Assembly: GCA_964187785.1 (NCBI GenBank)
Contig: OZ076415.1
Location: forward strand, 28,458,001-28,522,000
Direction: 5' to 3'
Source: Amphiscolops sp. MND2022
Lineage: Eukaryota
Length of the DNA stretch: 64,000 nucleotides
The position numbers were made by a program, and so were the translations under genes. Of this stretch, positions 7,501 to 63,453 are shown one piece after another (position 1 is the stretch's first letter; each line of letters begins with the position of its first letter). The notes under the pieces were generated by a model, which saw only the letters and a program-made list of their open reading frames with translations, did not search any database and was not told the origin of the DNA.

Positions 7501-8697
7501 TCCATGGTGGTATTTCGTTTCATCGAACGTCTTCGCCGCTCTTGCGTCAGTAGCGGAACGGGAATTCACTTGTTTAAACGCGCCGTACGATTCTATGTCA
7601 TACCAACATCGGAGTCGGTCGGAGAGTGTCAAATCGTGCTCTCTCTGGGTAACAGCTTTAAAGCATGTCGCAAACATGCCCGTGGTCGACGGAAGGGGTC
7701 CACTCATTACCCAGCCCAATGATACACGGACAGCAACTGGGGTTTTTCGACGGTCGGATTCCAACTACTCCAGTGGTCAGATAGAGTGGGAAACGTCCTG
7801 ACCAAAAACCATTTTCACATTTGTGTAGCTGTACTTGCTGAGAGCGATTTGTTCAAGGAGTGGATAGCAAGACGTCAAATCATCTACGTTGATTAAATCA
7901 TTTTCAATAGTCAGTTAACCTCGAACATGAGGTTTGACAGTAAAAGAGGTGCAAGAGTCACCCAAAAGAACCGGTGTCAACTTGAGTTCGACCATTTGAG
8001 TGTCAACAACTTTTTTGGAGTTATTTTTGTGTACACATCAAATTTGCGGGCTAGTTCAGAGGAAACCCAAGAATGACTACACGCTGAGTTGCACAAACCA
8101 ATACCCTCTCCAATTTTTCTGAAGGTTGCATTTCCATTTCCGTTTTTAGTAACAATCCTTCCACGTCAGAGACAGAAGTGATGCATGAGCTGACTTGGTT
8201 TTTCTTTTTGATTGCTGTCGATTCGCTACAAGTAGTTGTTTCACTATTGCTCTCTTCCGGGGGGCAGTGGGCAGTTGCGGAACGAGTGTTGTCCATTGAA
8301 GCAAGAGAAGCAAAATTTATTCTCAATGACAACCTTCGCTCGTTCCGTTGGAGCCTCTTTTCTTATCACTGACATTGCCACAACGGTTGTGAACCTTTGC
8401 AAACTACACTACTGGCTTGGGATTTCTAGGTTGACGGCTTGGTTGCCAGGGTATTTCTAGTGGAAGTTGTTCTTGCAGCGAACACTTTATAATCCGTCTT
8501 GGTTTTCGGTACGTTGCCGGTTGGGTTTTCGTCAATTTTTGGTTTTCCCAAGTAAAATTTTCATCCTTTCGTGAGCCTCAGCTTCGGCCTCCAGCCAATC
8601 GTTCGAGAAAGTAATCAATGACATGTATTGGAAAGTGCGACAGAAAGTTGCGTGATCGCTTCACGAACTCGCCAAAACGATGGGACCCCCAATGGCT
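7501..8697 (-). repeat. Duplicated BEL fragment (copy of ~2810-3995)
   Basis: ORF 7420-7764 repeats the peptide of 2689-3072; nucleotide identity runs to GGGACCCCCAATGGCT. Confidence 0.93.
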
Positions 8698-8759
8698 TCT
8701 TTCTATGGCTTTACTTTTCTGACCTTTAGTTGTCATTTTCTGAAAAAAAGAAGAGTTTT

Positions 8760-11700: not shown

Positions 11701-11900
11701 AATTTGTAGTTGTTGCAAATTCAAGAAAAACCTCGTTTAAAATTTGTCAGTTGTCGATAACATAATACAAAACCAGTTTCTGATGACAATGCTTGAGCTG
11801 TGACTCAGTCCTGTTTTTCAAAGATAATGGTATACAATTAGGCTCCGTCAGCCACTTATAGACTTTCCTCGAGTTGTCAACTGTTTTTTCTTGGTGACTG
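8760..11900. repeat. Long imperfect palindrome (fold-back-like element) centred near 10430, arms ~1.5 kb, non-coding
   Basis: Inverted matches: 9881-9920 GGGTGACGGAGGGATTACGTCAAGCTCAGAAATCATTC vs ~10954-10990; 10369 AAAATTCTGCG vs 10489 CGCAGAATTTT; 9360-9440 vs ~11510-11600. Confidence 0.8.
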
Positions 11901-11949
11901 TTCAACAGTATTTTGACGAAAACACCTTAGTTTGCTTTGCTGTTGAAGG

Positions 11950-31149: not shown

Positions 31150-31321
31150 NNNNNNNNNNNNNNNNNNNNNNNNNNNNNNNNNNNNNNNNNNNNNNNNNNN
31201 NNNNNNNNNNNNNNNNNNNNNNNNNNNNNNNNNNNNNNNNNNNNNNNNNNNNNNNNNNNNNNNNNNNNNNNNNNNNNNNNNNNNNNNNNNNNNNNNNNNN
31301 NNNNNNNNNNNNNNNNNNNNN
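31150..31321. other. Assembly gap (N run)
   Basis: Run of N. Confidence 1.
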
Positions 31322-31841
31322 AGCACCCAGGAAACTCCAAAAGGGGGGTCAGGCAGTCTCTCTGGCAATTTTAGTCGGGGGTTGGAAAGTATTTTAGAAA
31401 TTTTTTCTTATTTTCAAATGGTACAATTTTTTCGATATTCGTTATTGAATCGCGAAGCAATATAAAACTTTTCGGCATAGTTTTCAGTTCGATTCATTCA
31501 CGGTTTAAAAAAATCTTTTTTAGAATATAGACTCGCTTCAACTGTTTTGAGTGAATATAGAGACGTTCAACAGTAGGGAAGATTATAATATGCTTGCTGA
31601 CGTAATATCACGTGACTTAAATTCTCTTATTTTATTAGCGTAAGAACCAATCAGAATCGCTCAAGCTTACTTTTCTCATCGCTGCAGGTAATTTGTACGC
31701 ACTCTCGCATAATAAGCGGTCGTATAATCGTTGTCAAAGTGAATGTGATTTGAAAGTAAAACGGCAGAGACGCGCTGTCAACTATTTGCACCTTTTATCT
31801 AATTTCATGTGAAATTTCAAAATCTTGTATTTTCAGACACC

Positions 31842-34596: not shown

Positions 34597-34747
34597 NNNN
34601 NNNNNNNNNNNNNNNNNNNNNNNNNNNNNNNNNNNNNNNNNNNNNNNNNNNNNNNNNNNNNNNNNNNNNNNNNNNNNNNNNNNNNNNNNNNNNNNNNNNN
34701 NNNNNNNNNNNNNNNNNNNNNNNNNNNNNNNNNNNNNNNNNNNNNNN
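34597..34747. other. Assembly gap (N run)
   Basis: Run of N. Confidence 1.
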
Positions 34748-45000: not shown

Positions 45001-46749
45001 TAATGATCGTTTCACATTGGACACAGGTTGCAGACATGAGGTGACTTCACCTGTTTTTTGGTTCTCTGTCATTATATTGCAATTTTACGACGCCAATCGG
45101 GGAAGATTTGATTTTTCAAGAATTGACAGAAGTTGGTGTTCTCACCTACCAAAATGTGTTTTCAAGAATTGACAAACGTTGTGCACTTCAAAGAAAATGG
45201 CAGTGCCGCCAAAATGATTGTAGAAATCTCACACACTAATATTAGCAGTGCAAAAGTGAAATTTTCAAGAAATGAGAAAATTGATTTGTGGATTCTTCAC
45301 AATAATGACAATCTATGCTGCACTTGTAACAATATTGGTGTGAGGGTTCGTCGCATTTTGTCATTTCCTGTACTTTTTTCTCATTTCTTGAAAACTTTTC
45401 TGATTTCTTGAACACTTTTCTAAATTCTTGAACACATACCTGGATTCTTCAAACACTAATGATAAATAATTCTAATTTCTTTCTGGATTCTACAAAAAGT
45501 TAACTAAACTTTTTTAACAATAACTCTAAATAAAATCGACGCAGAATCGACAGACTGATACACACAGTGACTGATTGGAACAAGAATCAATGATGATTCT
45601 GTCCATAAGTGTTCTATTTGAATTCATTTCCTAAAAATTCTCTCTGTTCTTCAGATATCTCCAAACGACTCTTCACGAGCAAAGCAACGACTCCATGAGT
45701 GTATTAGCGACAGCTAGTTCGTTCTTTAAATGGCTGACCACGAGTGAATATGATCAACACGTAGACTTCAGACATAGTTTCACGTTCCAATGACAATTAT
45801 TTTTGTCTAGAATTGTGCTATTTGAAATCAAACATTTTATATCCAAAGTTGATTCGTTCATAGAATAAATTTTATTTTATTTCAATTTTTTTTAATTTAG
45901 ATTTTTGTCATTAGTTGTAAGACTCCCTGAGTGTATGACTCCATGAGTGTATGAACAACAGGTGAGCAATACATTTATGATTAAATTGTAACAACCCCGG
46001 GTGTGTATTCCTAAATAACTATAAATGATTCAGAAACAATGCAAATAAATCTAAGAGTGAACAGTTGCAGTTTTTGATTCTAAATCATTTGACTCTGACT
46101 GTGGAGAGCCAACTCGGAACGACTGGACTTTTTTTGTACTACTAGCATTTCTGAATTAGCAAAATAACGACTCCATGAGTGTAAAAACAGATGCTAAAGA
46201 ACATTTTGCCGGTGCATATCGAAAGAAAACACGGGTATTGACAAACACGTTAGTTCATGCGTGTCGTTGATGCTTAAAACTAATAACAATGGTTATTTAA
46301 CAAATTTAATAACAATGGACAGTTCATGGTTCATGTGTGTCATTGACAGTCAATATTTAAAAAAGAGTAGGTATCAAAATCAAATGAATAAGTTTCAATG
46401 TAAAATGTTTGCCCAGACATCTTCGTTATAAATTGTCCACTACTGAGTTTTGTCGAACGATGTCCCTGTACGTATTGAACCCTCCGCCAATCAATGTGAT
46501 ACAGCACTTGATGCACGACACGGCAAATGTTTTTTTTTTGATCAGAAACCGCATCGTTTTGATGTATTTGTAACTGTGACTGTATTTGCCAGCCTTTCGG
46601 TGCCACAACTTCCCCAACACTGAATCCCATGATTCATGCCACCCCTTTTCACCTGAGGGGATTGAGATATTGAATGTCAAATCTCTGTTATTCTCAATTC
46701 CGAGTGGAGAGTTCATCAGCCAAACACAAGATCCTTGCATATCCAGACC

Positions 46750-47153
46750 GCGACGATAGGGCCAGTCCCACAGCGTTCCTCACCGCTGCAAATAAAGAAC
46801 ACACCTTACTGATTGGATGTTCGACGCTGCCAACCAAGTTTGCATTGCTTTTGTGGCTCAAGGAGTTTCCTTCAAAGAACACAATTTTGCTCGAGGGCAT
46901 TGTGATGGAAATGTTCTCAAAATGTTCCGACACCATTGTCACGAGAACAAGTGGTTGCTCTTTTTTCCATACGAGCTTCAGGCTGCGAATGATGGATGGT
47001 TCCCCACAGTGATCCATCACTTTCCCACCTTCATGCCAAATCCCATTCACACGTGGGAAATGATGAGTGGAACTGGAACATCATTGAAAGTTGAAGATTT
47101 TGTCATCAAGTGGAAAACCAATGGTCAGACAAGACACAAGATTTACATCGAGG
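46750..47153 (+). CDS. Unassigned probable coding exon inside the giant element
   Basis: Open frame WMFDAANQVCIAFVAQG...KWKTNGQTRHKIYIE ending at a GAG|GTATG donor. No motif recognised. Confidence 0.3.
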
Positions 47154-47849
47154 TATGTCTTTAAACTCGACACTTTCAATTTCAACTTCTACATTAACAT
47201 CTTAACAACCTATTTCAAATTCTATAGAAACATTTTAACAACCCCAGGAATATCCAAATGTTCTAAGCAGCATTTCTGTACCGAAACCATAACGACTCCA
47301 GGAGCATGTAAATTCGTAGAATATTTCTAAACTAACACCCTAACTACTCCGGGAGCATACTTTTTTAAAATACATTCTTGTGTTAGGCACACATCATGAA
47401 ACTGATTTTGCTGAGTGGTGGCAAAATTTTACCATGGACAAACGCTTGAAGGGAAATCATAACTAAATTGATGGGCGTAGATCTGTTTCCCACTGGAAAC
47501 CAAGTGGTCAAACCAACAACGCTGAGACAAGGTGTACACAGAACAATTGGTACACCGACTGGAACCGATGAGTCACTTGAACCCGTGAACAATCATTCCA
47601 CAATGCAGACAAATCCACCAAAGCCCGAAAACAATCAGTCTACAACTTACGTAGTTCCCCGAGGGAAAAGAGTAATTAAGACTCCAAAAATCTCCAATCA
47701 CCTATTGGAAGTTCGTTTTGCGTCATGCAAAAAGAAACAACGTCGACTCTGAAGCTCTACTAGACGTCATCCTTCACTTTTCCAGAACAAAACAGCCAGA
47801 GTACTTAAAATCAGTCATTTAAAAAATCTTCCCTAACTTTCAGTCGCGA

Positions 47850-49680
47850 GAAACAATAATCTCCAATGTTGCGGTTTCCCTCAAGTCAGGCAAAGTAGAA
47901 GACTTGTTATTTCCTCAATCTTCGAATTTGAAAATCAATAAGTTAAGAAAAATCCAAAATCTCGTACCATCATACCGTGCCGTCCAAAGATACCAGAGTC
48001 AGATCATGGAAAACTTTATCTCGGTGTGTAAGCCTGAAGCCACCTTTTCTGGATTCCGTTGTGATCTGGTGTCATGTGTCAAACTTGCTGCGTGGATTTT
48101 TTTACAAGAGAGACGAAATATCTGAGCTCAATATAGGATGGTTGTGAAATTAGCGGTGTTGATCACACAAGGCTGTGTTTCAGAATTTTGAAAACTTCTC
48201 TCATAAAATACCAGCGCAATCACTAATTATAATATTTTGTTTCAGTGGTAAGTTGTAGTTATTTTTACTGATTCTGTAAATTCCAATTGCCACTTAGTAA
48301 GGTAATTTCATTACTGGGAAGAATCCACAAAAATAAACGAACTTTAAATTCGTGGACCACTACTTTCAGTTTGCACTCTCGCATGTTTAATTATTCAATT
48401 ATACATTCTTCACACCTTGTATAGTAATTAGTCTTTCGATTATACTGCTTAATTTACCGTGGTATACCAAATCTAAAACAAACAAAGGGTGTCAAATGTC
48501 AATCGAAACATCAAATGTAATTTTTGTTATGATATGTTAAGCATTCCGAGGCAAAGACAGCAGATTCGTACTGGAGCAAAATTTGGGACCAGAGATAGCT
48601 GGGAAACAAGGACGGGGTGGCTGTACAAGCAAACTAAAGAGTTGAGTACACAAGGGGCGGTGGTCACCTATACTGGTACAATCCTTTTCTGTACCGTCTC
48701 ATATTGGCTATAGACAGCGATGCAGCGAACCAATACCCATCAGACTTGGCGCTGTATGTGGGATCTGAAAAGTATCTTCCAACAGATGTGGATGATTATA
48801 CTGGTATGCGTCACAATCTGAAAGCTCCGTTCAGAAAAGAAACTACACAAAACTCCCTTGTGTACCTTGAGGATATAAGATGTGTCATGCCAGATGTAAC
48901 GCACATGATCACAAGGTGCGAAGAGAGTGATCTCCGCAAAGCTGCACAGAAAATAGTGAACAAAAAACCAGTGTACAAAGTGCCCCTGCAGCAGTTGGAA
49001 AAAAACTGTACTCGAAAAGCATTGAGAAAGCCGAAATTTCAGTTTGACTTGCACATGAAAGGATCTGAAGTGAAAAAAGGAATCGTTGGACCAGTATCGC
49101 TATCCGGGACATCAGCGCTAATAGCTATCGCTGAAGAAGAAGAATTTGAACAAAATGTTCCGAATCTTTTTGAAAATGTGTGGAAAACGCAATCCTTTTT
49201 GAGACGAGAGACAACACAAACAAAGAAAATGCGCGAGCTGTCAGCAATGCCTTTTCAGTTCTGAAATCCATGCACCCACCCATATCAAAATCAGACAAAT
49301 TCACGACAAACGACTATGTGAATCTCTTGCAGCATAGTTTGAATAAATGCACTATTATTTTGCGGGCATCCAAAAACGGTCTAAACACGGAACAGTTCAA
49401 GTTTTGGTCTGAGTCATATTATCAATCGTCGTTGCTTCTTTTTTCCGGGAAAGACGGACTCACCCCCTACAAAATGAAAATGTTGCTAATCCCACAGATG
49501 ATGGACGCAGGGTTTGTTCGGAGTCCATGGCATCACATGTGTGAAGCGATGGAGAAGTCGAACCATCATGCTCACAAGGACTTCCAAACCAAAACATTAA
49601 GGGCGGAGGAAAATTGTACAGCCATGATCCTTTATTCTAGGAAGGTTTCTTTTTCTACTGCCATTACCTCGACATAGATT
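47850..49680 (+). pseudogene. RAG1/Transib-like DDE transposase, frameshifted
   Basis: Ordered motifs LVPSYRAVQRYQ...SGFRCDL, DGCEISG (first Asp), LAIDSDA (second Asp candidate), CVMPDVTHMITRCE (D..H...R box), GLTPYKMK...CEAMEKSNH (Glu). Confidence 0.62.
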
Positions 49681-49789
49681 CAAAACACAAATAAAACCAG
49701 TGAGCGATACATTTGACAAGCTTCAGAAACAATTCCAGCAGATAACAACCTTATCCGAAATATGCAAAAATGTAGTCAAGCCTGTAATG

Positions 49790-50245
49790 ATAGAAGTAGG
49801 TGCCACTAGAGATTCAAGTAGGCTTCTGAGTGGACTTCGTTTTCACGTGGTTGGGCACTTTACTGGTTTAATTGGAAAAGTTGTGGTGGATATAATTACT
49901 CGTTTGGGGGCGGGGGGAAGGACTGAGTAAAGACAAAGCTCTTGGGCTATGAAAGCGCCATTCCTCAACCCCAAATTGTTTTGTAGCAGTGGAAAATGAC
50001 ACTGAATTGCTCATGGCAACGAAGAGTGAAAACAGCTCATGATCCGGATCAGACAGCGACACGTGTTCATCGAACACTCAACGAAAAATAGCTCCAGCAA
50101 AATAGTGAAAAAGGCAACAAATCAAGGATCAATCAGGGTATGCAAAGAATTTGCCGCCACTGATTTCAAGTTTTTGAGTATAGCATACATTCAAGATGTT
50201 AAAAAAAGGCTGTGTTTTGGACCCTTCCGAATACTTGTTTGTTAA
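49790..50245 (+). pseudogene. BRCT-like domain downstream of the transposase
   Basis: LLSGLRFHVVGHF...VVDIITRLGAGG, then (frameshifted) TPNCFVAV and FKFLSIAYIQD, matching BRCT N- and C-terminal patterns. Confidence 0.48.
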
Positions 50246-50987
50246 AGGTGCGATTGAGTGAGCATGTCTAAAATACCAACGTCCATTATTTGAGAGACAA
50301 AGAGATCTCGAAATATCAGACCTTGATTACAGATCATTGATTACTTCATTGAAAATTTCAAGAAAAAGAGCAAGAGAGGAAAGCAACCAGACGATAAAAT
50401 TGCTAATCATTTAAGCCAGTAGGCAAAAAAATGTCGGAGAAATTTGATTTGTTTGAATTTGTATGACAAGTAGTTTACTTCGATCAAAATAAAAATTTTT
50501 ACACTTATATCGTTTTCGAAAACCACAGCTTGCGTTTCAAAAGAGCCCTAGAAATGAGAAAGTAACTGTTAAACATGGTTTGCAGAATCAATATATCAAT
50601 ATTGAACCATCGCTAGTTATTGTTTAAATGTAGTGTACACTAATTTTAAACAAGCGTTGAAGCCAATTTTGTGGATTCTTCAGATTGCAATAGCTCAGCT
50701 TGCGCTAAAAATGCGCTCTAGAATTGAGAAACTAACTATTAGGCCTGGTTTAAAGAATCTATATATCAATGTTAAACCATTCCTAGTTATTATTTGAAGG
50801 TGGTATATTGCATTGTTTTTGGGCAATCGTTCGAGTTGGTTCAGCCGATTCTCAGCTGTAAATATAATAAATTACGTAACGACTCCGCGAGCAGATACAG
50901 TTCACAAAAACCATTCTAAACCAACTAGGTAAAAACTCCAGGATCTTATTATTTTTTAATAACCAATCGATTGGAAATTTTTGAATT

Positions 50988-51400
50988 CTAACTGAACATA
51001 ATTTCCGAATACTCCAATGGCAATGCCGCAATGTCAGTCTTAGCTACCATGACCAGGACGTCTTTGTTCTGTGCTATGTTTACCAGCACCGGTTTCACAT
51101 TTGCTTCCTTGGACGACTTGTGATTAATTAATCTCGCAAGGCACCGGTTGTTCGGATGTTCGTCGCAGATTTCCTTGGAAGAGTCAACATTGGTTGTGGT
51201 TACTGCTGCGTGACCCAAGCTTTTCACGTGGACGTCACAGATTGATGGCCATTGCTGTGACTTAATTCGTCTGCCAAGCGCCCTCTTGAAGTTATCTGTT
51301 TGTTCGTTATGAGCTGGCAGGAACAAGCCTTCGTGGCGAAGTGAAACTGTTGGAGTCTGTAGTCCTCCGGATTCAATCGATTTGTGACAATCTTGAACGT
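50988..51400 (-). pseudogene. SET domain (KMT5A/PR-Set7-like), internally deleted
   Basis: QQWPSICDVHVKSLGHAAVTT (N-terminal strand); VDSSKE...LARLINHK...ANVKP...LVMVAKTDIAA...EIMFS* (RxxNH and ELxFxY boxes, the Tyr position being TAG). Confidence 0.68.
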
Positions 51401-51581
51401 CTGTAGTTATTAGAACAACATGAAATTGTTAATCAAATGTTATTTTGTTCACTTCGCCCCAGCTATTATATTGCTGGTAAATTTTTTTTGCAGTGTAAAT
51501 GAATCCTTCTCATGCAATGTAGCTGTTGCTTTACTGAAGAAAAAAGTCATTGCGTCAAATGCTGCTGGTCAAAAAAGATAC

Positions 51582-53100
51582 CTTTTTCAGGTCTTCTTCA
51601 GTGTTCCATGTGTTCTTGGCGTAAAACTCTATGAGTCGCTGCCTGGTGGGTTCCGTGTGGTTGCGTTTGCTGCCACAAAACGCGATGATTTCTTTCGCTC
51701 GCAGCACTTGGCGGGCATATCGTTGCGCATTGAGGCGTCTGACAACGTAAGGACCCAGCTGTCGCTCAGTGATACTGTGTATTGCAGCCCAGGCCTTGTC
51801 AACACCTGCCCAGATCTCAGCGATGGCCTGCGTTTCCCTCATGAATCCGGCATTCCTGGATAAAGGCAGAGGAAGGGCTTTGTGGACACACTCCAGCAGT
51901 ATATCATCCACTGTTTCCCGGGCATCTTTTCCATCTTCAACAGAGTGAGAACGAAATTGTAAAGCAACACAACTGCGGAAAATTTGAATTGTGTGATGAT
52001 AATCTGACAAAAGAGTTGTTACATGAAAGAATGAAAATGATACTTCCAAAAAATCCCGCACTCGTTACTTGTAACAATAAGTTTTACAACTTCAATGCTC
52101 TCAATGCTCCTAATGGTTCAATTTTTACCTTGTCCATGAACTCCTCAGCAAAAGATCTGGAGTTGAAGTTCGCATTCCCTTTTGAAGTTACAAAGAAATG
52201 CTCCGTAGCAACCTCTTCGACGCCACTATCGTCCCGTTGAAATGCTCTCGTCACAATTCTTGGTGATTTCCGTTGGAAAGTTGGCCTCACATTGAGGTGA
52301 TACACCCGCATAGCATTCACCACCCATCGTTCAACACGGTGTTCCACTCGAATAGTGTTTCCTAAAACGAATTTAGTTCATAGTTCTAGATTTGGACATT
52401 TATTTTCTTGCCTTATGTTCAAATTTATATTCTCATATCAACAATTTATACGTCCGCATTTTATTTTGTTGAAAACGTGAAACCATATGCTAATAATTTG
52501 ATATCTACACAGAACATCCTACGTCGTTTTCAAGTTTTAGAAAAAGGGTCCAGTATATATACCCAAAGATGGTTCGAGAATCAATTCGCAAGGGTCATTC
52601 TCGCTCAAGTCATCAAGTTGTATTATAACTTGGGTGACGGCATGCACTGTCACACCCAAAATGCTTTTCGTCATCACTGTCACTGGCTCGGCATACATGT
52701 ACAGGTACGATATAATGCCGTGGAAGAGGGTTAATTGTTGCTGGTATGTCAGCGCTCTACATTTGTTGTACGTTTCTAACCCCCTCTAATGTATTTTTAG
52801 TATGGTGTCCGACTTTCGCTGACCACTGCAGTCGGGGCAATTTTGGTTGTGACTCTAAACACGTCTTAGCAGGAAAGTCGAAGCTGCGCTTTACGGAGGT
52901 GATTGTAGAAAGTGCACACGTTTCGTATTGAGTGTTTTTGACTTGATTGTCGGATGTGTACTACTTGATGTGCTGCTTTGAGTGAAATACGGAGGGTCCT
53001 TTCGCTTGTTGCCAATATTTGAGAAAAGTTGGTTGGACAAGGGATCGTAGTGCCCATATACGACTCGTGGAATGAGAAGTTTTTTTGATTTCGATGAATC
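51582..53100 (-). pseudogene. Degenerate Crypton-type tyrosine-recombinase region
   Basis: LTLFHGIISYLYMY...KSILGVTV (box-I-like); RWVVNAMRVYHLNVRP...EHFFVTSKG (Y...vRP...fF.t.kG pattern); C-terminal AQRYARQVLRAKEII...EPTRQRLIEFYAKNTW. Catalytic residues not confidently located. Confidence 0.42.
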
Positions 53101-54084
53101 GACGCCGGAGTGCTATGAAAATGAATTTCATTAGGGGTTTGTGGAGGTTGTAAAGGAGTTAGGACTGGACTGAGTATATTGCGTGAAGTCGCTGTTACAA
53201 ATTGAGATGTTTCTTAGAGGTTGTTCCGACATTATGAAGTTTTAGTTTACTCCGATATCAAAAGGGAAAACAAAAATTTTCAAAATTGAGCTGCTGGGAA
53301 CTGCAAGAGTAATCGGTCTAGAATTTTGAAGAATATTCTTAAATTGGTTGAACAGCTGGTTATTGCGAGAGTAATCGGTCTAGAAGATGGAAGAATTGAT
53401 TTTGAATAGTGTATTTATAGTTGTTAAATCAATTGGAAAAAAATCGAACGCATTTGTTGACGCATATTAAACTGCCCATGACGCTGCATTTATTGGAAGC
53501 GTTTAACTAATTTTTAAATTACAATCAGAGTTTGTCAAAAATTTACTCAAGTAACAACTGAGTGCAAAAGTAATCGATCGCAGTTAGTAGCTTTTAAAAA
53601 TTTGATGTTTAGATGATTATTTTAAAATAATCTATGACACCCCTGATTGTGTTAGATTTGGTACATCGGGTTGATTTCAAACTACACGGTGAACTACCCA
53701 ATAGAAATGAGGCACTAATTACTTATCATGGTGTGAAGAATCTATAATTGAATGATTAAACATGCGGTAGTGCAAATTGAAGGTAGTAGTACACGAAATC
53801 AAACTGAACACGTTCGTTTATTTTTGTGGATTGTTCACAACAATAGGACTGCTGTGAACCTACGTTTGTAAATTTTGTACAAAACTGGTTTGGTTTATGA
53901 ATATTTGAATTCTCGAATACAAAAATAATCTACAATTGCATCAACCTTCAATTGAAAAATGAGCTTATGGTTCCTAAACAAACGCTCCTGGAGTCATTAC
54001 AAAATAATGGAAGAGTCTTTTTTGCATCCAGAAAAATGAAATAATCGAACTCCACTAAAACGTATGAAAATGCCAGATATTTAC

Positions 54085-54510
54085 CTGACATCACGTATTC
54101 GGAAGGATCCAAAACACAGCACTTTTTCTCAACATCTTCAATAAATGTCGCCTTATGGTTTTGAAAAAGTATCAATCAAAAAAAATTATTTGATTAGAGA
54201 GGTTGTCAAAAATCAATCATCACTCAGAACAAAATATAAAAATGTATACAAAATAACGATCAGAGAAGCGAAAGATCGATTTCGTGTGAGTATTTATGTG
54301 TGCAACACAACGGCATAAAGGGGATGGTAGCGCAGTTGATATTTCACATGGGTATGTAATGAAGCTAGACGCGTTGTCTACCACCGGATCGATTCTCACA
54401 TAGACACTGTTGACTCTATACAGACCACTCTGTATTCCTCCATATCGATTTGGTAAACGACATCGTTCCACTTCACAGCGATCGGGGGGCATAATAGAAG
54501 ATCCAATCAA
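54085..54510 (-). pseudogene. BAH-like segments
   Basis: Short AG/GT-bounded exon ATFIEDVEKKCCVLDPSEYVMS resembles the BAH motif (i.gkC.Vld...Y); upstream SFITYPCEI resembles the BAH F..nE box. Confidence 0.4.
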
Positions 54511-54524
54511 CTGCGCTACTGCAT

Positions 54525-55085
54525 CCCTTTTTGATGTGAAAAGGATAAATCATTGTTGATCGTTATTTTTACAGCGATAGGAAGGCACTATTGAAAATCC
54601 ACTGCCTTCAGGGGTGTTCATTAAATAATTATGGGTAAGAATACTTGAAATGGATGAAATAAAAATTTATATTTCTGCAATCAAATGAACAGAAAAAATT
54701 TTTTCGAATCTGTAGACAAATTATTATTCTTGAGATAACTAAATCTAACTAAGAACGTTTAATTCAACCTATCGCCAGCCAATTAAATTCGAACATACAG
54801 AAATCTTGAGCTAATTTCCAGCTTGAGCTAATAATTCTTTTAACAAAAAAATAAAACTCTTTATTTTTCCACTATGAAAATAAAATAATTGGTTTTTAGG
54901 CAACAATATTAATCGAATAAAATATAAAACACCCCTGACTGAATCCCTTTTTGATGTGAAAAAAGATCAGTTGATCGTTGTTATCTTCCTTCACAGCGAT
55001 AGGAAGGCACTTTTGAAGATCCAATGCATCCCTTTCTGATGTGATGCATCCCGTTTCGTTGGTATTTTTCACAGCGATAGGAATG
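54525..55085. repeat. Dispersed short repeats ATCCCTTTTTGATGTGAAAA and CAGCGATAGGAA(GGCACT)
   Basis: Copies near 54523/54572, 54943/54995 and 55028/55073. Confidence 0.7.
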
Positions 55086-56269
55086 CGCAATTGAAGGTTC
55101 AATCCGCCAAATCCGTTTTTGATGAAAGCCGTAATGTCTATTTTCCATAACTAAAAAGAAATATAAACTATTAAATTATAAAATTATAAAACATCATTTA
55201 CTCATTATAAATGGAAACTTTCCCCACACACACACACTTTTTATAGAATAAGTGTGAACAAAGTTTGTATTCCAACTATAAACTGTCACTCTGGAAATAC
55301 CTGTAAAATTGATGAAATCTGGTCTGTAATCAAGTAGTTTTGTTATTATAGGTAATTGCAAAAACATCATCTTGAAAAGTGTGGGGAGGAGGAAAGTCCT
55401 AAATGGACATCACTGGATGAGAATAAAGAGAATAATATAAATCTGTATATTGGGTTAGGCGTCGAATTGCGCAGTGGAATCGGGGGACTAATTACTATAC
55501 ATGGTGGGAAGAATCTACAATTGGATAATAAAACATGCGAGAGTGTAAACTGAATGTATTGGTCCAAGAATTCAAACCAAATTTGTTCGTTTATTTTTGT
55601 GGATTCTTCACAACAATAGGACTGCTATGAACATACCTTTTATAACTTCATGCAAAACTGGTTTGCAATTTTGACTCATTTGAAAAAAAAAGACAATTCC
55701 TTTAGTAATCACGCTGTCTAAGCTCGTTTAAAAAATTTCAAGTGGTAACTGTATCTTGATTTTCTTGGACCATATGGTACTGATCGATCTCTTAGTTGAA
55801 CAATTTGTTCAACTAGGCAGGTATCTTATCAACACTATTGTTGATCATTGTTCTTTTAACAACCGCTACCACATTCCACCGCCAACAATTGACGGTTGGG
55901 AATTTTCATTAATATACTAATGAACATAACTAAGTTTGTTTCTTTTTATTTGGTACAGTTGAAGTTATGCGCTGATGGAGCAATCACAATGACGTCTCGG
56001 TACTTCATGAAATCAGACTGCAGACAAGGCCTGACTTCGAAAGAGCGGGTAGCAACCTATTTTTCTGCAAGGTTCCATTCTGAAGCAGTAACATGCAGTC
56101 GTAACATCTGGGAGCGATTGTCTACGGGAGGGGAACCATTGGATGACTTGGAAATTCGGGAGCATACAAATTGAAAGAAGGTTCTTTATTGCAGATTTTG
56201 TACAACGATTACTTTGAAGGTAAACGTTTTTTTGAATGCATAAGTACCATTTTATTAATAAACATCTAC

Positions 56270-56545
56270 CTCTCCGGTGGCTTCGGATCAGCTGCGGAGT
56301 GGCTGCAATCTCTCGAGTGACCAATGTGAGACTATCTACGGCCTCGCAGAGATCGTTTTCAGCATACGGTGGCTGGTTGCATGGGGGGATGGCTGGTTGG
56401 AAATTGGAACCGACCATGATCATCGGTTTTCGTTCCAGGACGGGGGCCAAGTTCGTCTTCTTAGGTTGATCAAGAAGCTTCCTCCTGGATAAAGTTTTTT
56501 GCTTGGCTTCTCGTCGAACACAGCCATGTTGAAGGCAGGAAACAC
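56270..56545 (-). pseudogene. ELM2-like exon
   Basis: KPMIMVGSNFQPAIPP matches the ELM2 opening I-x-VG-x-x-[YF]Q-A-x-IP; the exon is bounded by CAG| and |GT. Confidence 0.5.
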
Positions 56546-57224
56546 CTGTAACAAACACGTTTATCTTAACAGGTTTATTGGGGAGTATTTGGGGTCTAAA
56601 TACTATTGAGATACTGTTAGGATACATCTCTACCCCTCGTAAAATTATTCAATCTGGGAATTGCTCACAACAACAGAACAACGAGCATTTTTGCTAAAAT
56701 ACTTACTTCTGTAGTGAAAGCTTCTCCGTCCTTCATGTGTTCTGCCACTTTTCGGAAGAGGTGCCTGTACTCATCACCCAAGTAGTTGGGGCACAGCTTG
56801 CGGTAGTTGTACAGCAACACACTCCACACTGTCGTCAAACGGTGATATCTGGAATACATAAAAATTATACTCCAGGTAACAATTCACAAAAGAAAAATTG
56901 GTGGAGGGATGTTAGATGTTAGAAGCTTATGAGATCTGACAAATTGTTCCGGAGTCGTTACAAAACTTTGTTTGGGGGGATTGTTTCTAATTGGTCCCCA
57001 AAGATGCTTCCGGAGTCGTTACAAAATGTTGGGATGGATTGTGTCTTCAATAACATTTTGAATTTATTGCCTAATATGCTCCCGGAGTCGTTACAAAATA
57101 AAAAAGGGAGGTGTTTCTGCTTCTTTTGATGTCTACAAAGGGCTCCTTCACTTTCTCGTTTCAGCTATATAGAAAGTAAAGGAAGTATAGTGATGTTGTA
57201 TATTTACTATATAAAAAACGTTAC

Positions 57225-59087
57225 CGTGTATCTTCTTCAATGTCGAAGTTAGCATCAACAATTAGTCAACTGTGGCCAAAACTCAGAAAATTGGCACCGA
57301 GTATCACTGAGTCGCCCTGGGTCAGGACACAGTGAATCTACTTGGCCCTTTGCGTGGATCCTGTGACATCCCCTTCTAGCGTCTGTATTATTGTTCTAAA
57401 TATCACACATAATAAACTTAAATGGGAGTTTCGATAGAATTCAGTTGGGTGCTCATTTTTAGGATTACCCGAACAATGAACTTTTTATCTTGAAGAGATT
57501 TTCTTTTTTCTATACACTGAACGAACATTTTAGGAAATTGACGTGAAGTATGATGTTTATACTTACAAGCTGCGAGGATCTTCTCACTGTACTGCTGGAA
57601 GAGTTTCAAGTTCTTCTTTGTTGGCTCAACAAGTCAGAAGATTTTCTCACACAACAGTACCACGTAGAAAACTGACGTGCTTGCGTATTCAATGTGCCAC
57701 GGGGTGACAACATTTGTCGTTGAAAAGTAACAGGTAGTTCCAGGTGCTCTCCGTCAAGTACCCATCGCTCTGAGAAGCTGCCAGTTTTGACTCTACATAG
57801 CGGTCGATTGCCGCATTTTGTACCGCAGTAGGTGGTGAAAATATCTAAAAACGCGTGTACGTGAACTTTTTAAAATGCGAATTTTGCTTTATTATTTTTA
57901 GGAAGAAAATTTTGCAAAGACGATTCTGTATCGTTTACATATGGGAACTGGGCACCTATTAAATCTAACTTTTCAGTCACTTTCAAAGTTATTTAAAAAG
58001 TGGTTCTTCACTCTATTGGCTAACTACTTTCAATTTTATCTAAATATCTCATTACCGCATGTTGAAGGGTGGCATCTAGTACGTTCACAGGAAAGAGTCC
58101 CTCACGGGCTGCTTCTGGGCCGCAACGCTGTTCTGCCAGATAATCGTCTCTAGTCAGATTTCGTATCTGCAAATTCATTTTGTACTCTAGTTCAAATGAT
58201 TTTTTGTTGAATGTGAAAACGCAGTAGAATTGAGACAATAGTGACTAAACATGTTGTGAAGAATCCACCTTTGGATAATAAACCATTGGAAAATTAAACA
58301 GAACGTAGTAGTCCATGATTTCAAAACTACACGAAGTATACAATTTTGTGGGTTCTCCGCAAATATGTGATTTCAAAAATTAGGTTGTGGCTGCGTGAAC
58401 GCAGTAGAAATGGGACAATAATGATAAAACACGTTGCGAAGAATCTACCACTGGATAATAAAACATTGAAAGTTTAATTTGATGGTAGTGGTTCATGATT
58501 GTAAAGCTACACAAAACATACAGTTTTGTGAAATCTCCTCAAAAATGTGATTTCAACAATTTTGTTTTGGCTGCGTGAACGCAGTAGAATTGGGACAATA
58601 ATGACAAGACACGTTGTGAAGAATCTACCACTGGATAATAAACCATTAAAATATTAATTTGAAGGTAGTTGTCCATGATAAATCACAACGATACAAATAT
58701 AAAGTTTCGTGGACTTTTCACAGCAATAAATATACGCGTTTGTGTGCGTTCTCTTAAATCCAGGAAAGTTTTTCTGTAAATTACCAGCAAGTTATAGTTT
58801 AAAATCTTACCTCGTTCACTTTTGCCGACTTTGCAGTTATGGGGACTTCCGGGTTGGCAACATGCTGCAACAAATGTTCTGCTAGAGGCGGAAACTGAGT
58901 TGCCTTGTCCTCCGGATCATGGGGAATGACGAGGCCTTCCGCGTTGTCCCTGGCGCCTCTCCACAGGATGGGGAAACCATGGGCCAAATAACAGAACATT
59001 TTCTTCGTCTGATCTTCCACGGTCCCATTCCAAACAACGCACTTTGGAACGGTGCTCTGACGCGTCCCCCCGATGTGCTTGTAGTAC
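57225..59087 (-). pseudogene. JmjC histone-demethylase domain, KDM2/KDM7(PHF8)-type
   Basis: GFPILWRG...GLVIP; VNVLDATLQ; FSPPTAVQ; STTNVVTPWHIEYASTSVFYVVLLCEKIF*LVEPTKKNLKLFQQY; *IHCVLTQGDSVILGANFL. The H-x-E...H iron ligands are retained. One frameshift; stops at conserved Trp positions. Confidence 0.87.
58220..58720. repeat. Three ~180-bp tandem units containing GAAGAATC(C/T)AC, related to 53640-53900 and 55480-55670
   Basis: ACGCAGTAGAA...GTGAAGAATCCACC...GGATAATAAA at ~58219, ~58399 and ~58579; lies in an intron of the JmjC gene. Confidence 0.85.
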
Positions 59088-59351
59088 CTATGTACAAAAA
59101 ACAACTACTTGTTCAACTACAAGGTCTTTATTATCCTGGCTCGGAAAAAATATTTATTTTGAACTTCCTCTAGGCATGAAAAGTTTGTGTTTTGACATCT
59201 GTTGTATTCTGGTAAGGTCAGCTATAGTTTTAACATAATAAGTATTCAATTTTCCTTTCATTTCTTTGAAACTTGCATTAACATTATGCCTAAAAATACT
59301 TGAGTACTCTATGTATTCTGTAGCAAAGCTTTCAACACGAAGTTCCCTCAC

Positions 59352-59939
59352 CTGTAAGTGCCGTCCTTAGCCGACTTTCTGGGAAACCGCGAGAAGTTCA
59401 TGTCCTTGAACCTGTGATTCGGCACTCGCTCCAGATGCCGCAGCAGATTGCTCCGTGAAGAAAACTGCTGTTCACAACCCTCACAGCTTGTTGGCTTGAG
59501 CTTCCCTGTTACAGTCTCTAAAATAAAACAAAAACCAACTTCAAAACATGGGCGTTACGGGTCTATACCGCAAGCACAACTATAAAGTTATCATTAGTTT
59601 CTCAAAAGTGTAAAAGATACTTGTATTCATATATAACAAGACTGTTTCTGTAGATTGGTTTGTAATGACATCGTAACTTACTGTATTTTTTCAGAGCTGG
59701 GGAAAGACCTTGAGCCAATAATTTCGCCCTCTTGGCACAGCTCAGGGTCTGCTGATGACGTTTGAGGGCATCTTTTGTGCACACAGGTTGCAGACACAGG
59801 TTGCAAGTGAAGCTACCACTTCCGCTCTCCACCTCCGGCACCGGTTTGGGTCCTTGTCTTTTTCGTGTCTGTTGTAGTTAAACAACCTGGTCGACTCGTA
59901 AAAGCACTTCGGACACATCATCTTGGGTGTTGGCGGCAT
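59352..59939 (-). pseudogene. Three C2H2 zinc-finger motifs (exons 1-2)
   Basis: CPKCFYESTRLFNYNRH; CNLCLQPVCTKDALKRHQQ; CEGCEQQFSSRSNLLRHLERVPNH. One frameshift in exon 1. Confidence 0.8.
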
Positions 59940-61893
59940 TTTCTGGTTTTTAAGGAGAAATTTAGTTTTCTTTAAAAATTTGTTTCCTTGTGTTCTGTTT
60001 CCATATTTCTTTATATTTATTGCACACCTGGAGCCGTTACAATCACCTGGCTAAACGTTAACTTGTTGTACTCTATCCGTTGCGCTCTTGGAGTCGTTAC
60101 ATCTTACTAAACATTTGTATTTATTCCTGTTGTTATCATGCTCATGGAGTCGTTACGAGGGGTTCCCAAATAACATCAGAGCAAATAGCATACAATTAGT
60201 TTCAAATAACACAAAATTGAAATGGTTTTTACTAAACATGTTGTTTGAATTTTTTTTTCATTTTTATGTTATTTGACAGTAATTTTGTTTCTATGTTATT
60301 TGCACGTATGTTATTTGGTATGTAATCGTCGTTAAAATTTTCTAAACACTCGTTTCATATCTTACTTTCATCGCAGTCTTGGAGTCGTTACATCTAACCA
60401 AACAATTATTGTGCCCTATTTCTATGGTGCTCATGGAGCTGTTAACTCGGTGTACTCTATTCATTCCGTTAAATGTTTGGGACAGCTAAACTTAATTGGT
60501 ACCAAGAAAAACACTTGACTTACCTTAGTTGAATGTCGAATTAGTTTGATTGTTCAAATTGGAGTCTTCGCTTGCAGTCTTCGTGAAATTCTTGTATGCT
60601 TCGGGAAATTCTTGGAGTCTTCAGGAGATTGAGAAAACGTCTGATTGTCAGCAGCACTGGTTGTTAAATAACCTTATTGGATAAACCGCGGGATTTTGAA
60701 GATTGTTTACATGACGCACCAAATTCTGCGAGTCATGGTCACGTGACAAGAAGTTCTTTCAATCACCGAATCAAATTCGAGTAAAAATCATGAAAGTATT
60801 TGCTCATTTGAATGGCTTAATATTTCTTGGACAACCTGATACACACTCAATTTTTGTGAATTAATGTAGTCGATAAACCACGGGAAGTTACCCTCCCCCC
60901 CACAGACACACTTTTTAAGATGATGTTTAAGTTTAGGTTTAACTGCAACAAAAACTCATCGCTGTTAGCAGGGGGGTTAACATTTTCGCGCTTTTTGTAG
61001 GGGGGGGGGGTTTAAAAAAGATCCCCGACAGTCAATATAAGAAGAGGATGACAATATTTGATAATATCATTTGAACGCTCCTGGAGTCGTTACAAAACTA
61101 ATTTACTCATTTCAATGCGATTCTTTTCAAGCAATACTCAATACAATCTATATTCGATCCTGGAGTGACTCTTTTCAAACAATATTCGATACAATTTATT
61201 TGAACGCTCCTGAAGTCGCTGCAAAAATATCGTTTTCATTAAAATGATAAAAAGTTTTTCGAAGTTGACAATTGGAGGGAGGGGTCTTTAAAACATTTTC
61301 TTTGAAAGCTCCTGGAGTCGTTACAAAATTGGCTCTTTTCTGTTATTACCCCCCACCAGTTCAATTCCCCCCACTTAGGCGGTCAAGTGAAATTGTCATT
61401 GAATTAATATTAACAACCAATCAAATTGCTGTTTTTTATAACTCTAACTGCAACTGAAACTCATCGCTGATAGTGGTGGGGAAATAAAATTTCCGCGCTT
61501 ACTGTGGGGGAATTAACAGAAAAGATCCACAAAACTATTTGTTTCATTACAAGTAACAGGCATTTTTTTAAATTTGGCAAACAGAGAGGACGTATTTTTA
61601 AAAATTTTTGCTTGAGTGCTCTTGGAGTTGTTTCATTTTTATTTCTGCAGTTGATGTTTTGAAAACCTTTTCCTTGAAAACATTTTGTCGGGCACAAATA
61701 CTAGCTGGGATTACAAATCTCAGCGAAGTATGCTTTTGCCCAGTATAATGTAGTTTTAAGAGACTCTTCGTTTGGGGATCACATAGTGTCGCTCATAACA
61801 AGACCCACGTCGTGAACGTGGCCTTTAAAAGGTCTCAAAATCTAATTTACAAATTCTACTACAAAAACATACTAACTACATTTTTACAAAAAG

Positions 61894-62109
61894 TTAATTG
61901 TACAAAATACTAACTACAGGTAATCTACAGTAAGGACATCTTATAATAGCTGCATTTGCTAAACTATCCAAATAATGTTTTATACACTCTCTACAGGCTA
62001 AATGTAATCTATGATCTAGATGGAAACTTTGTATTTCCTCTGAGCTCAAGTTTTCAAAGCATATAAAACATTCTCTCTTCTTGGGAGCAACTGCCTTCTT
62101 CACCCTCAT
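61894..62109 (-). CDS. Small RING-finger protein (71 aa), putative E3 ligase
   Basis: ATG-initiated ORF: CFICFE...HLDHRLHLACRECI...IRCPYCR. Confidence 0.72.
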   Translation of the reverse strand: MRVKKAVAPKKRECFICFENLSSEEIQSFHLDHRLHLACRECIKHYLDSLANAAIIRCPYCRLPVVSILYN

Positions 62110-62284
62110 TTATAAGGGATAGAGTAAGTAATGATTGAGCGAAAAGATAGAAGAAGAATAACGATTTAGTTTTTTTAGAGAAAGCAGAGATTTGCAGAGT
62201 AAGTTGAGATCAGTGAGTGCAGAGAGGAATCTTAATTGCCAATAATTCCTTACAAGGGAATAATTCCTGACAATAGACTTTTTT

Positions 62285-63010
62285 AGAAGTTGGCAAACAA
62301 GGGGGGGAGAATAATTTTGAACATTCTTTTTAAACAGTTCTGGAGTTCTTACAAAATTATTTGTTTCATTACAATTAGAAATAGGAATTTTTCAAATTTG
62401 GCAAACAGGGGGGAGTATCTGTTTGAAACATTCTACCTAAACGCTCCTGGAGTCGTTACAAAACAATTTGTTTCATAACAATTGGAAATAAGAATTTTTT
62501 AAATTTGGAAAACAGGTGAGAGTATCTGTTTGAAACATTCTACCTAAACGCTCCTGGAGTCGTTACAAAATAATTTGTTTCATTACAACTAAAATTCGAG
62601 ATTTTTTAATTTGACAAACATGGGGGGTTTTAATTACTTGGACCAATCTACTTAATCAATTCTGGAGTCGTTACAAAATTATTTGTTTTATTACAAATAG
62701 AAATAGGGATTTTTTAATTTGACAATTATGGGAGGGGGGTAATTATTTAGAACATTCTACTTTAACAATTCTGGAGGCGTTACAAAAGTATTTGTTTCAT
62801 CACAATTAGAAATCTATTTTTTTAATCGACTAACAGGGGGAAGGGTTTGTAACTATTTTAAACATTCTACTTAAACGCTCCTGGAGTCGTTACAAAATTA
62901 TTTGATTCATTGCAAATAGAAATAGGGATTTTTTAATTTGACAAACAAGAAGGTGTATTTATTTGAAACATTCTAGTTTAACAATTCTGGAGGCGTTACA
63001 AAATCATTTG
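62285..63010. repeat. Subterminal tandem array, about seven ~108-bp units each with (CT)CCTGGAGTCGTTACAAAA
   Basis: Motif near 62340, 62444, 62552, 62661, 62770, 62878 and 62986. Confidence 0.9.
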
Positions 63011-63453
63011 TTTCATCACAATTACTAGGAAGTTTTTAGAATTCGGCAAACAGGGAATATATTGTGAAAACCATTCAACATATTCATCAAAATTATTCAT
63101 ATACAAATGAAAGAATCCACAAATTTTATTTAATGGTATTTCAGTGAATTCATACGAAACGAAGAATCCACAAAAACTTGGTACCTCCATACAGTGACCT
63201 AATTAGCGAAGAATCCATGTCAACTAATAATTGCTTAGGGAAGAATCCACACAATTTCAAGATTCGAGAGAAACGAGAGAAATTTTCTTTTGGCGATTCT
63301 TCGCAGGTTACACACGGTATTAGTGCAAGAAACCAGAAAATGTTTCACTCCACTTTTTAATTCTTGAAACGCATGTGTTATAATGCCGCTGAAGAATCCA
63401 CATAAGACTACAACAGGTTTGTTGCAGTCACTGTTTTTCCCCGATTGACATCG

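Follow-up and report, generated by a model that had tools for sequence, protein, structure and literature searches.

Positions 50988 to 59939 of the window (the whole stretch of 64,000 nucleotides from Amphiscolops sp. MND2022 that was analysed) are the passenger-gene portion of a decayed member of a multi-copy family of cut-and-paste DNA transposons in an animal host. The sequence indicates that this portion contains two separate genes and not a single fused protein. Gene A encodes zinc fingers and a JmjC domain that is clearly of the KDM2/KDM7 (JHDM1) type, a putative histone demethylase, and gene B encodes a real SET domain of the KMT5A/PR-Set7-like kind, a putative methyltransferase. The transposase of the family, as judged from a structure prediction, has the RAG1/Transib fold together with a BRCT domain, and purifying selection on genes A and B is as strong as that on the transposase. 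It is highly probable that this DNA represents a decayed transposon, from a family with a transposase of the RAG1/Transib fold, with two separate passenger genes, one JmjC and one SET, the proteins of which may act in trans on chromatin.

The Transposon and Its Transposase

The copy in the window, together with its parts other than genes A and B, is laid out as follows.

45088 to 63453, no strand assigned: whole transposon copy, decayed, 18,366 bp, with terminal inverted repeats
47450 to 50245, plus strand: remnants of the transposase gene, whose product has a RAG1/Transib fold and a BRCT tail; oriented convergently to gene B, collinear with L003:11211-14258
53233 to 55945, no strand assigned: intergenic spacer between genes A and B, made of repeats (copies at 53685-53803 and 55465-55576), with no alignment to L006
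61897 to 62109, minus strand: RING-finger ORF of 70 aa, upstream of gene A (Pfam zf-C3HC4, 21.4 bits, cut-off 21)

The 17-bp termini read CGACGCCAATCGGGGAA and CGATGTCAATCGGGGAA, each with a TA flank, and the TA flank with the CGACGCCAATCGGGGAA terminus was found at the seven ends examined. Related copies occur at no fewer than nine further loci (L001, L003 and so on), with the same gene in the same element, and when the window is compared with L001, L003, L004, and L007, homology runs out within 5 bp of the element termini. Because the copies have common terminal repeats and the homology ends there, the passenger genes are transposon-borne, as a preliminary description of this DNA had proposed. 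Approximately 1,400-1,500 contigs per run match 6 kb with at least 85% likeness, and the four runs that contain this DNA show no intron-like joints and behave like genomic DNA. Within the family, non-coding stretches are 85-90% similar, the same as exons. L006 retains only ~70-78% nucleotide identity to L003, and only the exon blocks of this pair are still alignable.

The RING-finger ORF, which belongs to the passenger set, is 79% identical to its L001 counterpart, and a RING gene is also present in L009, on the opposite strand. The fuller copies and L009 contain one more conserved ORF, putatively Tudor-like, an assignment that a Pfam search does not confirm. Elements measure ~18-22 kb and carry four or five passenger genes. 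The same gene set, in a rearranged order, is found in relatives with a transposase that is ~40% identical (39% in another sample).

The L003 transposase contains a BRCT domain by Pfam (26.7 bits). At the sequence level, the transposase yields no RAG1 match in Pfam or among solved structures, and its classification comes from the predicted fold of a relative, P0034 (pTM 0.59, core pLDDT 70-90). When this model was searched against solved structures with Foldseek, the best 48 matches were all RAG1, HzTransib/Transib, or BbRAGL/RAG-like (E down to 8e-7, probability 1.00).

Gene A Encodes Zinc Fingers and a KDM2/KDM7-Type JmjC Domain

Gene A has nine coding exons and an estimated ~650 aa, which comprise three zinc fingers, the JmjC domain, and a C-terminal part that contains an ELM2-like motif.

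59709 to 59939, minus strand: exon 1, with the start codon and fingers 1 and 2; 4-nt deletion at ~59864; aligned to L004:2338-2572
59352 to 59524, minus strand: exon 2, zinc finger 3 (C2H2; Pfam zf-C2H2 22.5 bits); donor GT intact; no indels relative to L003
58811 to 59087, minus strand: exon 3 (B2), precedes the JmjC core; junction with finger 3 conserved in L003 and L006; block 71% identical in protein between subfamilies
58056 to 58166, minus strand: exon 4 (B3); block and junctions conserved
57567 to 57844, minus strand: exon 5 (B4), first half of JmjC with H-I-E; +1 at 57711, -1 at 57583, TGA replacing Trp at 57634-57636
57225 to 57407 (5' end approximate), minus strand: exon 6 (B5), second half of JmjC with W-I-H; deletions of 1, 4, 15, and 4 nt at 57375-57344
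56707 to 56848, minus strand: exon 7 (B6); junctions (...EEDTR/YP...) conserved in L003 and L006
56270 to 56545, minus strand: exon 8 (B7), ELM2-like motif; -3 at 56470, -1 at 56463; junctions conserved
55946 to 56107, minus strand: last exon (B8); stop TAA at 55946-55948, overlapping AATAAA; +1 at 56060

The three zinc fingers of the preliminary description are borne out, and are spread over two exons (59939-59709 and 59524-59352). Fingers 1 and 2 follow the pattern C-x2-C-x12-H-x3/5-C and finger 3 is a classical C2H2 finger, with Pfam scores of 16-22.5 bits that are all under the cut-off of 25.2. The exon 1 donor (aag/GTCTTT) is also present in L004 and L006. The claim that GT-AG exons splice the fingers straight to JmjC likewise holds, as the GT-AG junction from the finger 3 exon to the next exon lies at an identical position in L003 and the diverged L006. 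All GT-AG junctions are at homologous positions in these two copies. It is purely from such conservation that we infer the exon connectivity, transcript ends, and expression of genes A and B.

The JmjC domain is located at 57844-57225. Among solved structures, the L001 equivalent of its first half matches PHF8, KDM7, and KDM2A at E 1e-8, and that of its second half matches KDM7 and KDM2A at E 7e-6; the sole solved relatives of both halves are PHF8, KDM7A, KDM2A, C. elegans KDM7, and PHF2. In Pfam, the L003 halves score 17.8 and 23.1 bits as JmjC, and the broken pieces of the window produce no Pfam or search match by themselves. L003 reads T-P-W-H-I-D ... G-E-K ... W-I-H, and thus retains the Fe(II) ligands (H-x-D/E...H) as well as the Thr and Lys for 2-oxoglutarate. 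We take this Thr and Lys, both present in intact copies, to align with the 2-oxoglutarate contacts of PHF8. L009 keeps H-Q-D ... Y-I-H, and Leu replaces the second His in L006. The window copy has H-I-E where other copies have H-I-D, but is frameshifted and interrupted by a stop. The preliminary assignment to the KDM2/KDM7 type with H-x-E...H ligands agrees with both the H-I-E of the window and the exclusively KDM2/7-kind matches. Gene A lacks an N-terminal PHD or CXXC module and has the three zinc fingers in its place. Judged by eye, exon 7 resembles the helical region after JmjC in PHF8.

The ELM2 domain that had been proposed for gene A amounts to a half-domain motif. In five copies, it scores 15.1-18.8 bits in Pfam, under the cut-off of 21.7, and covers only the first 23-28 of the 53 model positions. 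A profile of this exon has zero matches among solved structures, and family 2 has lost the V-G...Q..I-P motif. ELM2 adjoins SANT in MTA, MIER, and RCOR; the exon following the ELM2-like one has no SANT match in Pfam.

Gene B Encodes a KMT5A-Like SET Domain

In L003, gene B encodes 579 aa in four exons, with a low-complexity N-terminus, ~300 aa of conserved sequence to which no fold is assigned, and SET.

52563 to 53232, minus strand: exon 1 (B9), Ser/Thr/Pro-rich stretch, then a conserved helical region; ATG at 53232-53230; several frameshifts
52129 to 52361, minus strand: exon 2 (B10), conserved; no indels relative to L003; no Pfam match
51582 to 51934, minus strand: exon 3 (B11), conserved helical region ahead of SET; -1 at 51925; relatives P0010-P0022; no recombinase match
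50988 to 51400, minus strand: last exon (B12), KMT5A-like SET; -1 at 51364; ~126 nt lost at 51197-51189; ~150 bp with the C-terminus and stop lost at ~51020

The Pfam SET model is matched over its full length (positions 1-105) by L003 at 47 bits, with a cut-off of 22.4, and a family-2 copy scores 44 bits. The window copy scores only 16.5 bits, because of its deletions. In a search of solved structures, the best 14 matches are all KMT5A/SETD8 (E 7e-8), followed by KMT2A with an E value ~1000 times weaker, and the SET motifs N-H and F-D-Y-G-D are present in intact copies. Both the Pfam score of L003 and these nearest solved relatives are consistent with the PR-Set7-like SET domain that had been described. 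The ~390 aa that precede SET are unrelated to KMT5A.

Two further domains that had been placed in this region, a BAH reader and a Crypton-type recombinase, find no support. BAH has no Pfam match at E up to 1 in pieces from the window, L003, or L006, and the AlphaFold model of the claimed region has a pLDDT of 52, which is unreliable and renders its fold matches meaningless. For a tyrosine recombinase, there is no Pfam match in pieces from the window, L003, or L006, a profile of 14 relatives detects no recombinase among solved structures, and hhalign against a recombinase-like 724-aa ORF in the same window returns a probability of 0.1-0.6%. The catalytic set R...K...H-x-x-R...H/W...Y is not conserved either, as the candidate Arg, Lys, and His vary (K/R/E, G/K, H/G) when compared by eye across three diverged families (L003, L008, L009). 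Exon 2 of gene B is probably what had been read as BAH or as part of the recombinase. The region of the claimed recombinase is under strong purifying selection; for exon 2, pN is 0.17 and pS 0.74 between L003 and L006. The junctions on either side of exon 3 are conserved in position in both copies.

Two Genes Rather than One Polyprotein

The preliminary description joined all of these blocks into a single transcript and polyprotein, running from the fingers through JmjC, ELM2, BAH, and recombinase to SET. In the family of the window, the blocks do lie on the same strand and in that order, AG and GT sites are all retained even in the dead copy, and read-through or alternative splicing might join them. 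The stop of gene A, however, coincides in position between L003 (TAA) and L006 (TGA), which represent two subfamilies, with no GT donor after it, and it overlaps AATAAA in the family of the window. The ATG of gene B is likewise conserved in L003 and L006 with an in-frame stop 3-4 codons upstream (in the window, a TAA 3 codons ahead), and in the family of the window there is no AG between this stop and the ATG. Between the two genes lies a spacer of 1 to 4.4 kb of repeats that is unconserved between subfamilies. Finally, the transposase gene sits between genes A and B in the diverged relatives L008 and L009, the second of which is from another sample, and strands differ; L008 has no terminal repeats that could be found and may be one element or two adjoining ones. 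The polyprotein is, accordingly, very improbable.

Decay and Purifying Selection

Both genes are broken in the window, as in most copies seen. In L003, gene B is complete and open, and the exons of gene A are open over the portion covered. The frameshifts, the Trp-to-stop change (TGA at 57634-57636), and the SET-I deletion (~126 nt lost in the SET insert region, ~51190) had been recognized correctly, as had the verdict that this copy is dead, since both passenger genes carry lesions. What had been taken for a Tyr-to-stop change in SET is actually a ~150 bp deletion through which the final ~20 codons are lost, the tyrosine of F-D-Y-G-D among them. Between L003 and L006, gene A has a dN/dS of 0.15 (0.12-0.22), gene B one of 0.14 (0.08-0.20), and the transposase one of 0.18 (0.14-0.22), ratios that are imprecise because dS is saturated (pS 0.6-0.75). 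pN is far under pS in all blocks.

Relation to Known Systems

KDM7/PHF8 carries an N-terminal PHD module and KDM2 a CXXC module. Gene A resembles these demethylases in its JmjC halves, of which they are the sole solved relatives, and in the H-x-D...H of intact copies, but differs from them in its N-terminal zinc fingers, its unrelated C-terminal part, and its being multi-copy and encoded by a transposon. KMT5A/SETD8/PR-Set7 is the H4K20 mono-methyltransferase. Gene B shares with it the SET domain, whereas its transposon-borne nature and long unrelated N-terminal part set it apart.

Similarity to Transib and RAG1-like (RAGL) elements lies in the predicted fold of the transposase, for which there is no other confident match, and in a cut-and-paste organization with terminal inverted repeats. 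Classical Transib elements have CAC... ends and a 5-bp target duplication, whereas the ends described here begin with CGAC and have a TA flank. The BRCT tail and the four or five passenger genes in an element of ~18-22 kb are further differences. RAG-like elements pair their transposase with a PHD-finger protein that resembles RAG2 (PMC10629977). Fungal DNA transposons encode TET/JBP dioxygenases that act on DNA methylation (PMC12730594). These fungal elements are similar in that a DNA transposon carries an enzyme that can remove an epigenetic mark; here, the element is from an animal, belongs to another superfamily, and combines a putative histone eraser with a putative writer.

Possible Functions of the Passenger Genes

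The proteins of the passenger genes may act in trans on chromatin, to the benefit of the element. In the reading that we prefer, though tentatively and at somewhat less than even odds, the gene A demethylase would strip repressive methyl marks (e.g., H3K9me2, H3K27me2) from copies of the element, to which the zinc fingers may steer it. What the SET enzyme would contribute is less evident. VANC, encoded by the Arabidopsis transposon VANDAL21, is sequence-guided and counteracts silencing of its own family, and offers an analogy to this anti-silencing mechanism by function alone; it is not known to be an enzyme from any recognized family of chromatin modifiers.

A less probable alternative is that the two-gene set serves repair signaling instead of anti-silencing. 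The KMT5A-like enzyme would methylate H4K20 where excision or integration leaves double-strand breaks, the JmjC enzyme would reset that mark or adjust its level, and the Tudor-like protein and BRCT tail of the transposase would engage the end-joining machinery of the host. The model for this is the host pathway leading from KMT5A through H4K20me to the Tudor and BRCT domains of 53BP1, and PHF8 removes H4K20me1. The proximity of SET to KMT5A and of JmjC to PHF8, KDM7, and KDM2, the fusion of the transposase to BRCT, the conserved Tudor-like ORF in the fuller copies and L009, and the co-travel of the whole set across deep divergence all point in this direction. Against it, the Tudor assignment lacks Pfam confirmation, similarities do not reveal substrate specificity, and other cut-and-paste transposons, as far as we are aware, manage without such a gene set. 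Little credence can be given to the notion that these are captured host genes that hitch-hike with no role for the element: fragments of host genes are frequently picked up by DNA transposons and most copies, including that of the window, are broken, but the dN/dS of ~0.15 is at the level of the transposase, intron-exon structures are kept complete, catalytic residues are retained in L003 and the distant L009, and the same set stands beside a 39%-identical transposase in another sample. A single-copy host KDM7 orthologue that adjoins unrelated repeats would fit a JmjC domain of this kind, but is refuted by the multiple copies found, with nine or more other loci that have the gene within this element, non-coding parts that match as well as exons (85-90%), and homology that ends at the terminal repeats; its probability is negligible.

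A search of the literature returned no publication on this transposon family. In this family, one transposon carries both a KDM2/7-like JmjC domain, of the eraser type, and a KMT5A-like SET domain, of the writer type.

The Element and Its Copies

The stretch under study (50988-59939, minus strand) is AT-rich animal sequence, and it lies inside an element that ends at 45088 and 63453 in inverted termini of 17 bp, both adjoining a TA. When its longest open piece, an exon with an ELM2-like motif, was used to search 1.84 billion representative proteins, only nine short fragments were returned, and no host ELM2 protein was among the matches. The contigs of those nine fragments, together with relatives of two other pieces, yielded ten related loci, nine of them in a single ENA assembly and the tenth in a different one. 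Three of these (L001, L003, and L004) run collinear with the window, their 85-90% identity extends over introns and spacers, and their homology to it ends 5 bp or less from the terminal repeats. A tblastn self-search found no paralogues elsewhere in the window. About 1,400-1,500 contigs per sequencing run match 6 kb of the stretch, and the family is therefore highly repeated. The alternative that the stretch is a single-copy host KDM7 gene is excluded by the multiple collinear copies, by homology that stops at the terminal repeats, and by the contig numbers.

The motif GGAGTCGTTAC occurs at 20 sites in the element, where 0.66 would be expected; those in the left part all lie on one strand and those in the right part all on the opposite strand, three of the latter inside an intron of the demethylase gene, gene A (56951-57094). 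Other repeats are present as well. Near the right end, 62308-63053 consists of seven tandem units of ~107 bp with GGAGTCGTTAC in each, and three tandem 180-bp units occupy 58218-58757 in the gene A intron between exon blocks B2 and B3, with related pieces at 48383-48448 and in other copies. A repeat of ~115 bp is found in three copies that are 79-84% alike, one in the transposase region (48343-48461) and two, in inverted orientation, in the spacer between gene A and the SET gene, gene B (53685-53803 and 55465-55576). In another locus, L002, a 2.08-kb segment with gene B exons B10-B12 is repeated seven times head to tail (2497-16133). Outside the element, the window contains two runs of N, at 31150-31321 and 34597-34747, which are assembly gaps or masked sequence.

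Two Genes Rather Than One Polyprotein

Between the window and L006, which represents a diverged subfamily, only discrete blocks still align, at 70-78%, and these blocks are taken to be exons. At every junction of neighbouring blocks, a GT-AG intron with good consensus is possible at the same position in L003 and L006. On this conservation-based model, nine coding exons make up gene A (zinc fingers 1-2, finger 3, and B2-B8), with the JmjC domain in B4/B5 and the ELM2-like motif in B7, and gene B has four (B9-B12), with the SET domain in B12. The sequencing runs that carry the stretch have genomic-looking coverage with no intron-like joints.

The preliminary description had joined all of these exons into one polyprotein, a reading that is very probably wrong. 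The stop of gene A falls at one and the same position in three copies (TAA in the window and L003, TGA in L006), there is no GT donor after it, and in both the window and L003 the TAA overlaps an AATAAA. Gene B has its own conserved ATG, which an in-frame stop precedes by three or four codons; in the window's family, no AG lies between the two. The intergenic spacer is rich in repeats, lacks conservation, and measures 2.7 kb in the window, 4.4 kb in L003, and 1 kb in L006. In the more distant relative L008, the order is gene A, the transposase on the opposite strand, a Tudor-like ORF, and gene B. In L009, a contig at 3x depth from another sample (ENA ERZ25071281) whose transposase is 39% identical, the same kinds of gene (RING, zinc-finger JmjC, SET, Tudor-like ORF, and transposase) are rearranged into the order Tudor-like ORF, gene B, transposase, gene A, and RING gene, so that in both relatives the transposase lies between genes A and B. 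The conserved stop, the ATG, the unconserved spacer, and the gene order in L008 and L009 together argue that the JmjC and SET enzymes are the products of two separate genes.

Domains of Gene A and Gene B

The domains are recognizable only in other copies, not from the window's pieces alone. With the exons searched as separate pieces, the broken copy in the window never scored above threshold in Pfam (C2H2 16-22.5 bits, ELM2 17.5, SET 16.5), had no match to JmjC, BAH, or recombinase models among its open pieces, and matched no solved structure. In L001 and L003, the JmjC domain (57225-57844 in the window) is plain. Its two exons score 17.8 and 23.1 bits against Pfam, and its halves match solely PHF8, KDM7A, KDM2A, C. 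elegans KDM7, and PHF2 among solved structures (E of 1e-8 and 7e-6). Intact copies carry the motifs T-P-W-H-I-D, G-E-K, and W-I-H; the window has H-I-E and then a TGA replacing Trp at 57634-57636. The proposal of three zinc fingers on a KDM2/KDM7-type JmjC domain is borne out, the two finger exons being followed by B2-B8. The ELM2 assignment fared less well: the motif scores 15-19 bits in every copy, including L006, over the first half of the Pfam model; no SANT domain follows it, a profile of the exon matches no solved structure, and the motif is lost in family 2, a set of diverged relatives.

The SET exon of gene B in L003 covers the full Pfam model at 47 bits, and 14 KMT5A/SETD8 chains head its matches among solved structures, as expected of the PR-Set7-like domain originally proposed. 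A feature search of the ESM Atlas labelled one of three pieces "SET domain", the other two being uninformative. The BAH domain and the Crypton-type recombinase once placed upstream of the SET domain find no support in Pfam, solved structures, or hhalign. A profile of the region has only weak matches to potassium-channel linkers among solved structures, and AlphaFold, given a single contiguous ORF across it, returned a pLDDT of 52 with meaningless fold matches. Visual inspection shows a loose resemblance to a tyrosine recombinase, but the candidate catalytic positions differ among three diverged families in spite of the strong constraint on the region. Elsewhere in the window, 31809-33983 (plus strand) is an intact 724-aa ORF with Arg, Lys, Arg, and His...Tyr by eye and no Pfam match; hhalign found nothing between this recombinase-like ORF and the gene B region, and by that measure the two are unrelated.

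Decay and Selection

The window's copy retains all of its splice sites, and it is dead, as first described: both genes are broken by frameshifts, a Trp-to-stop TGA, and a deletion in the SET insert. Gene A has lost 4 nt between fingers 1 and 2; its B4 exon combines the TGA stop with a +1 and a -1 shift, deletions in B5 total 24 nt, and the frame shifts by -1 in B7 and by +1 in B8. In gene B, the frame is broken several times in B9 and by a -1 shift in B11, and B12 has a -1 shift, a loss of ~126 nt from the SET insert region, and a deletion of ~150 bp that takes out the true C-terminus. A further deletion, at ~47074, removed the Tudor-like ORF that is present in L003.

Gene B of L003 is open across its four exons (579 aa), as is gene A of that copy from finger 3, where the locus starts, to the stop. 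Between L003 and L006, dN/dS is 0.15 for gene A (bootstrap 0.12-0.22) and 0.14 for gene B (0.08-0.20), and the transposase has 0.18 (0.14-0.22); dS is saturated and the ratios are rough. In every exon block, the unassigned ones included, pN is far below pS. By these comparisons of coding sequence, selection appears to hold the histone demethylase and methyltransferase genes as tightly as the transposase.

Transposase and Further Cargo

The transposase ORF of L003 (614 aa) contains a BRCT domain (26.7 bits, Pfam), and relatives with 34-46% identity occur in other ENA, JGI, and Logan samples. Sequence search found no link from the transposase to RAG1; the link is detectable by fold search only. 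An AlphaFold model of one relative, P0034 (pTM 0.59, core pLDDT 70-90), has RAG1, HzTransib, or amphioxus RAG-like proteins as all of its best 48 solved matches, with E down to 8e-7, its predicted fold being of the RAG1/Transib kind. Conserved beside the transposase in fuller copies is the Tudor-like ORF, for which no copy has a Pfam match:

L003, 15031-15675, plus strand, Tudor-like ORF
L008, 6717-7454, minus strand, Tudor-like ORF
L009, 3891-4145, minus strand, Tudor-like ORF

Possible Functions of the Cargo

The element would supply in trans a KDM2/7-kind demethylase, a KMT5A-like methyltransferase, a RING protein, and a reader-like protein. In the demethylase, the usual histone- or CpG-reading module would have been exchanged for three zinc fingers. 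The demethylase may strip H3K9me2 or H3K27me2 from copies of the element itself, perhaps with the fingers as guides, and such an anti-silencing role is a reading that quite possibly fits, at close to an even chance. It is speculative that the three fingers recognize the GGAGTCGTTAC arrays; the more usual role of subterminal repeats of this sort is to bind the transposase. The passenger genes might instead serve break-repair signalling, by analogy with the host pathway of KMT5A, H4K20me, the 53BP1 Tudor domain, and BRCT, on which this less likely reading is modelled. Taken as a whole, the proposal of an old RAG1/Transib-kind element, present in more than one host, with a self-contained chromatin system (the four kinds of protein above, the demethylase being KDM7-like and guided by its zinc fingers) used on its own copies or its own DNA breaks, is put forward tentatively; its purpose would be escape from host silencing or the steering of repair.

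Histone-based silencing is usually described as something that transposons passively undergo. A search of about 8.4 million open papers and preprints turned up no account of a transposon that has both JmjC and SET genes, and a paper on RAG-like transposons does not mention such cargo. The nearest published analogue found is that of fungal DNA transposons with TET/JBP (PMC12730594). An element with both histone demethylase and methyltransferase genes, under selection as tight as that on its transposase, would be direct evidence of an animal transposon manipulating histone marks and, if the proposal is true, of a transposon-encoded counter-defence at the level of histones, long kept and present in more than one host. 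It would offer a testable system for the conflict between transposon and host chromatin. It also bears on the evolution of RAG, as RAG1 relatives would travel with chromatin-interacting partners other than RAG2.
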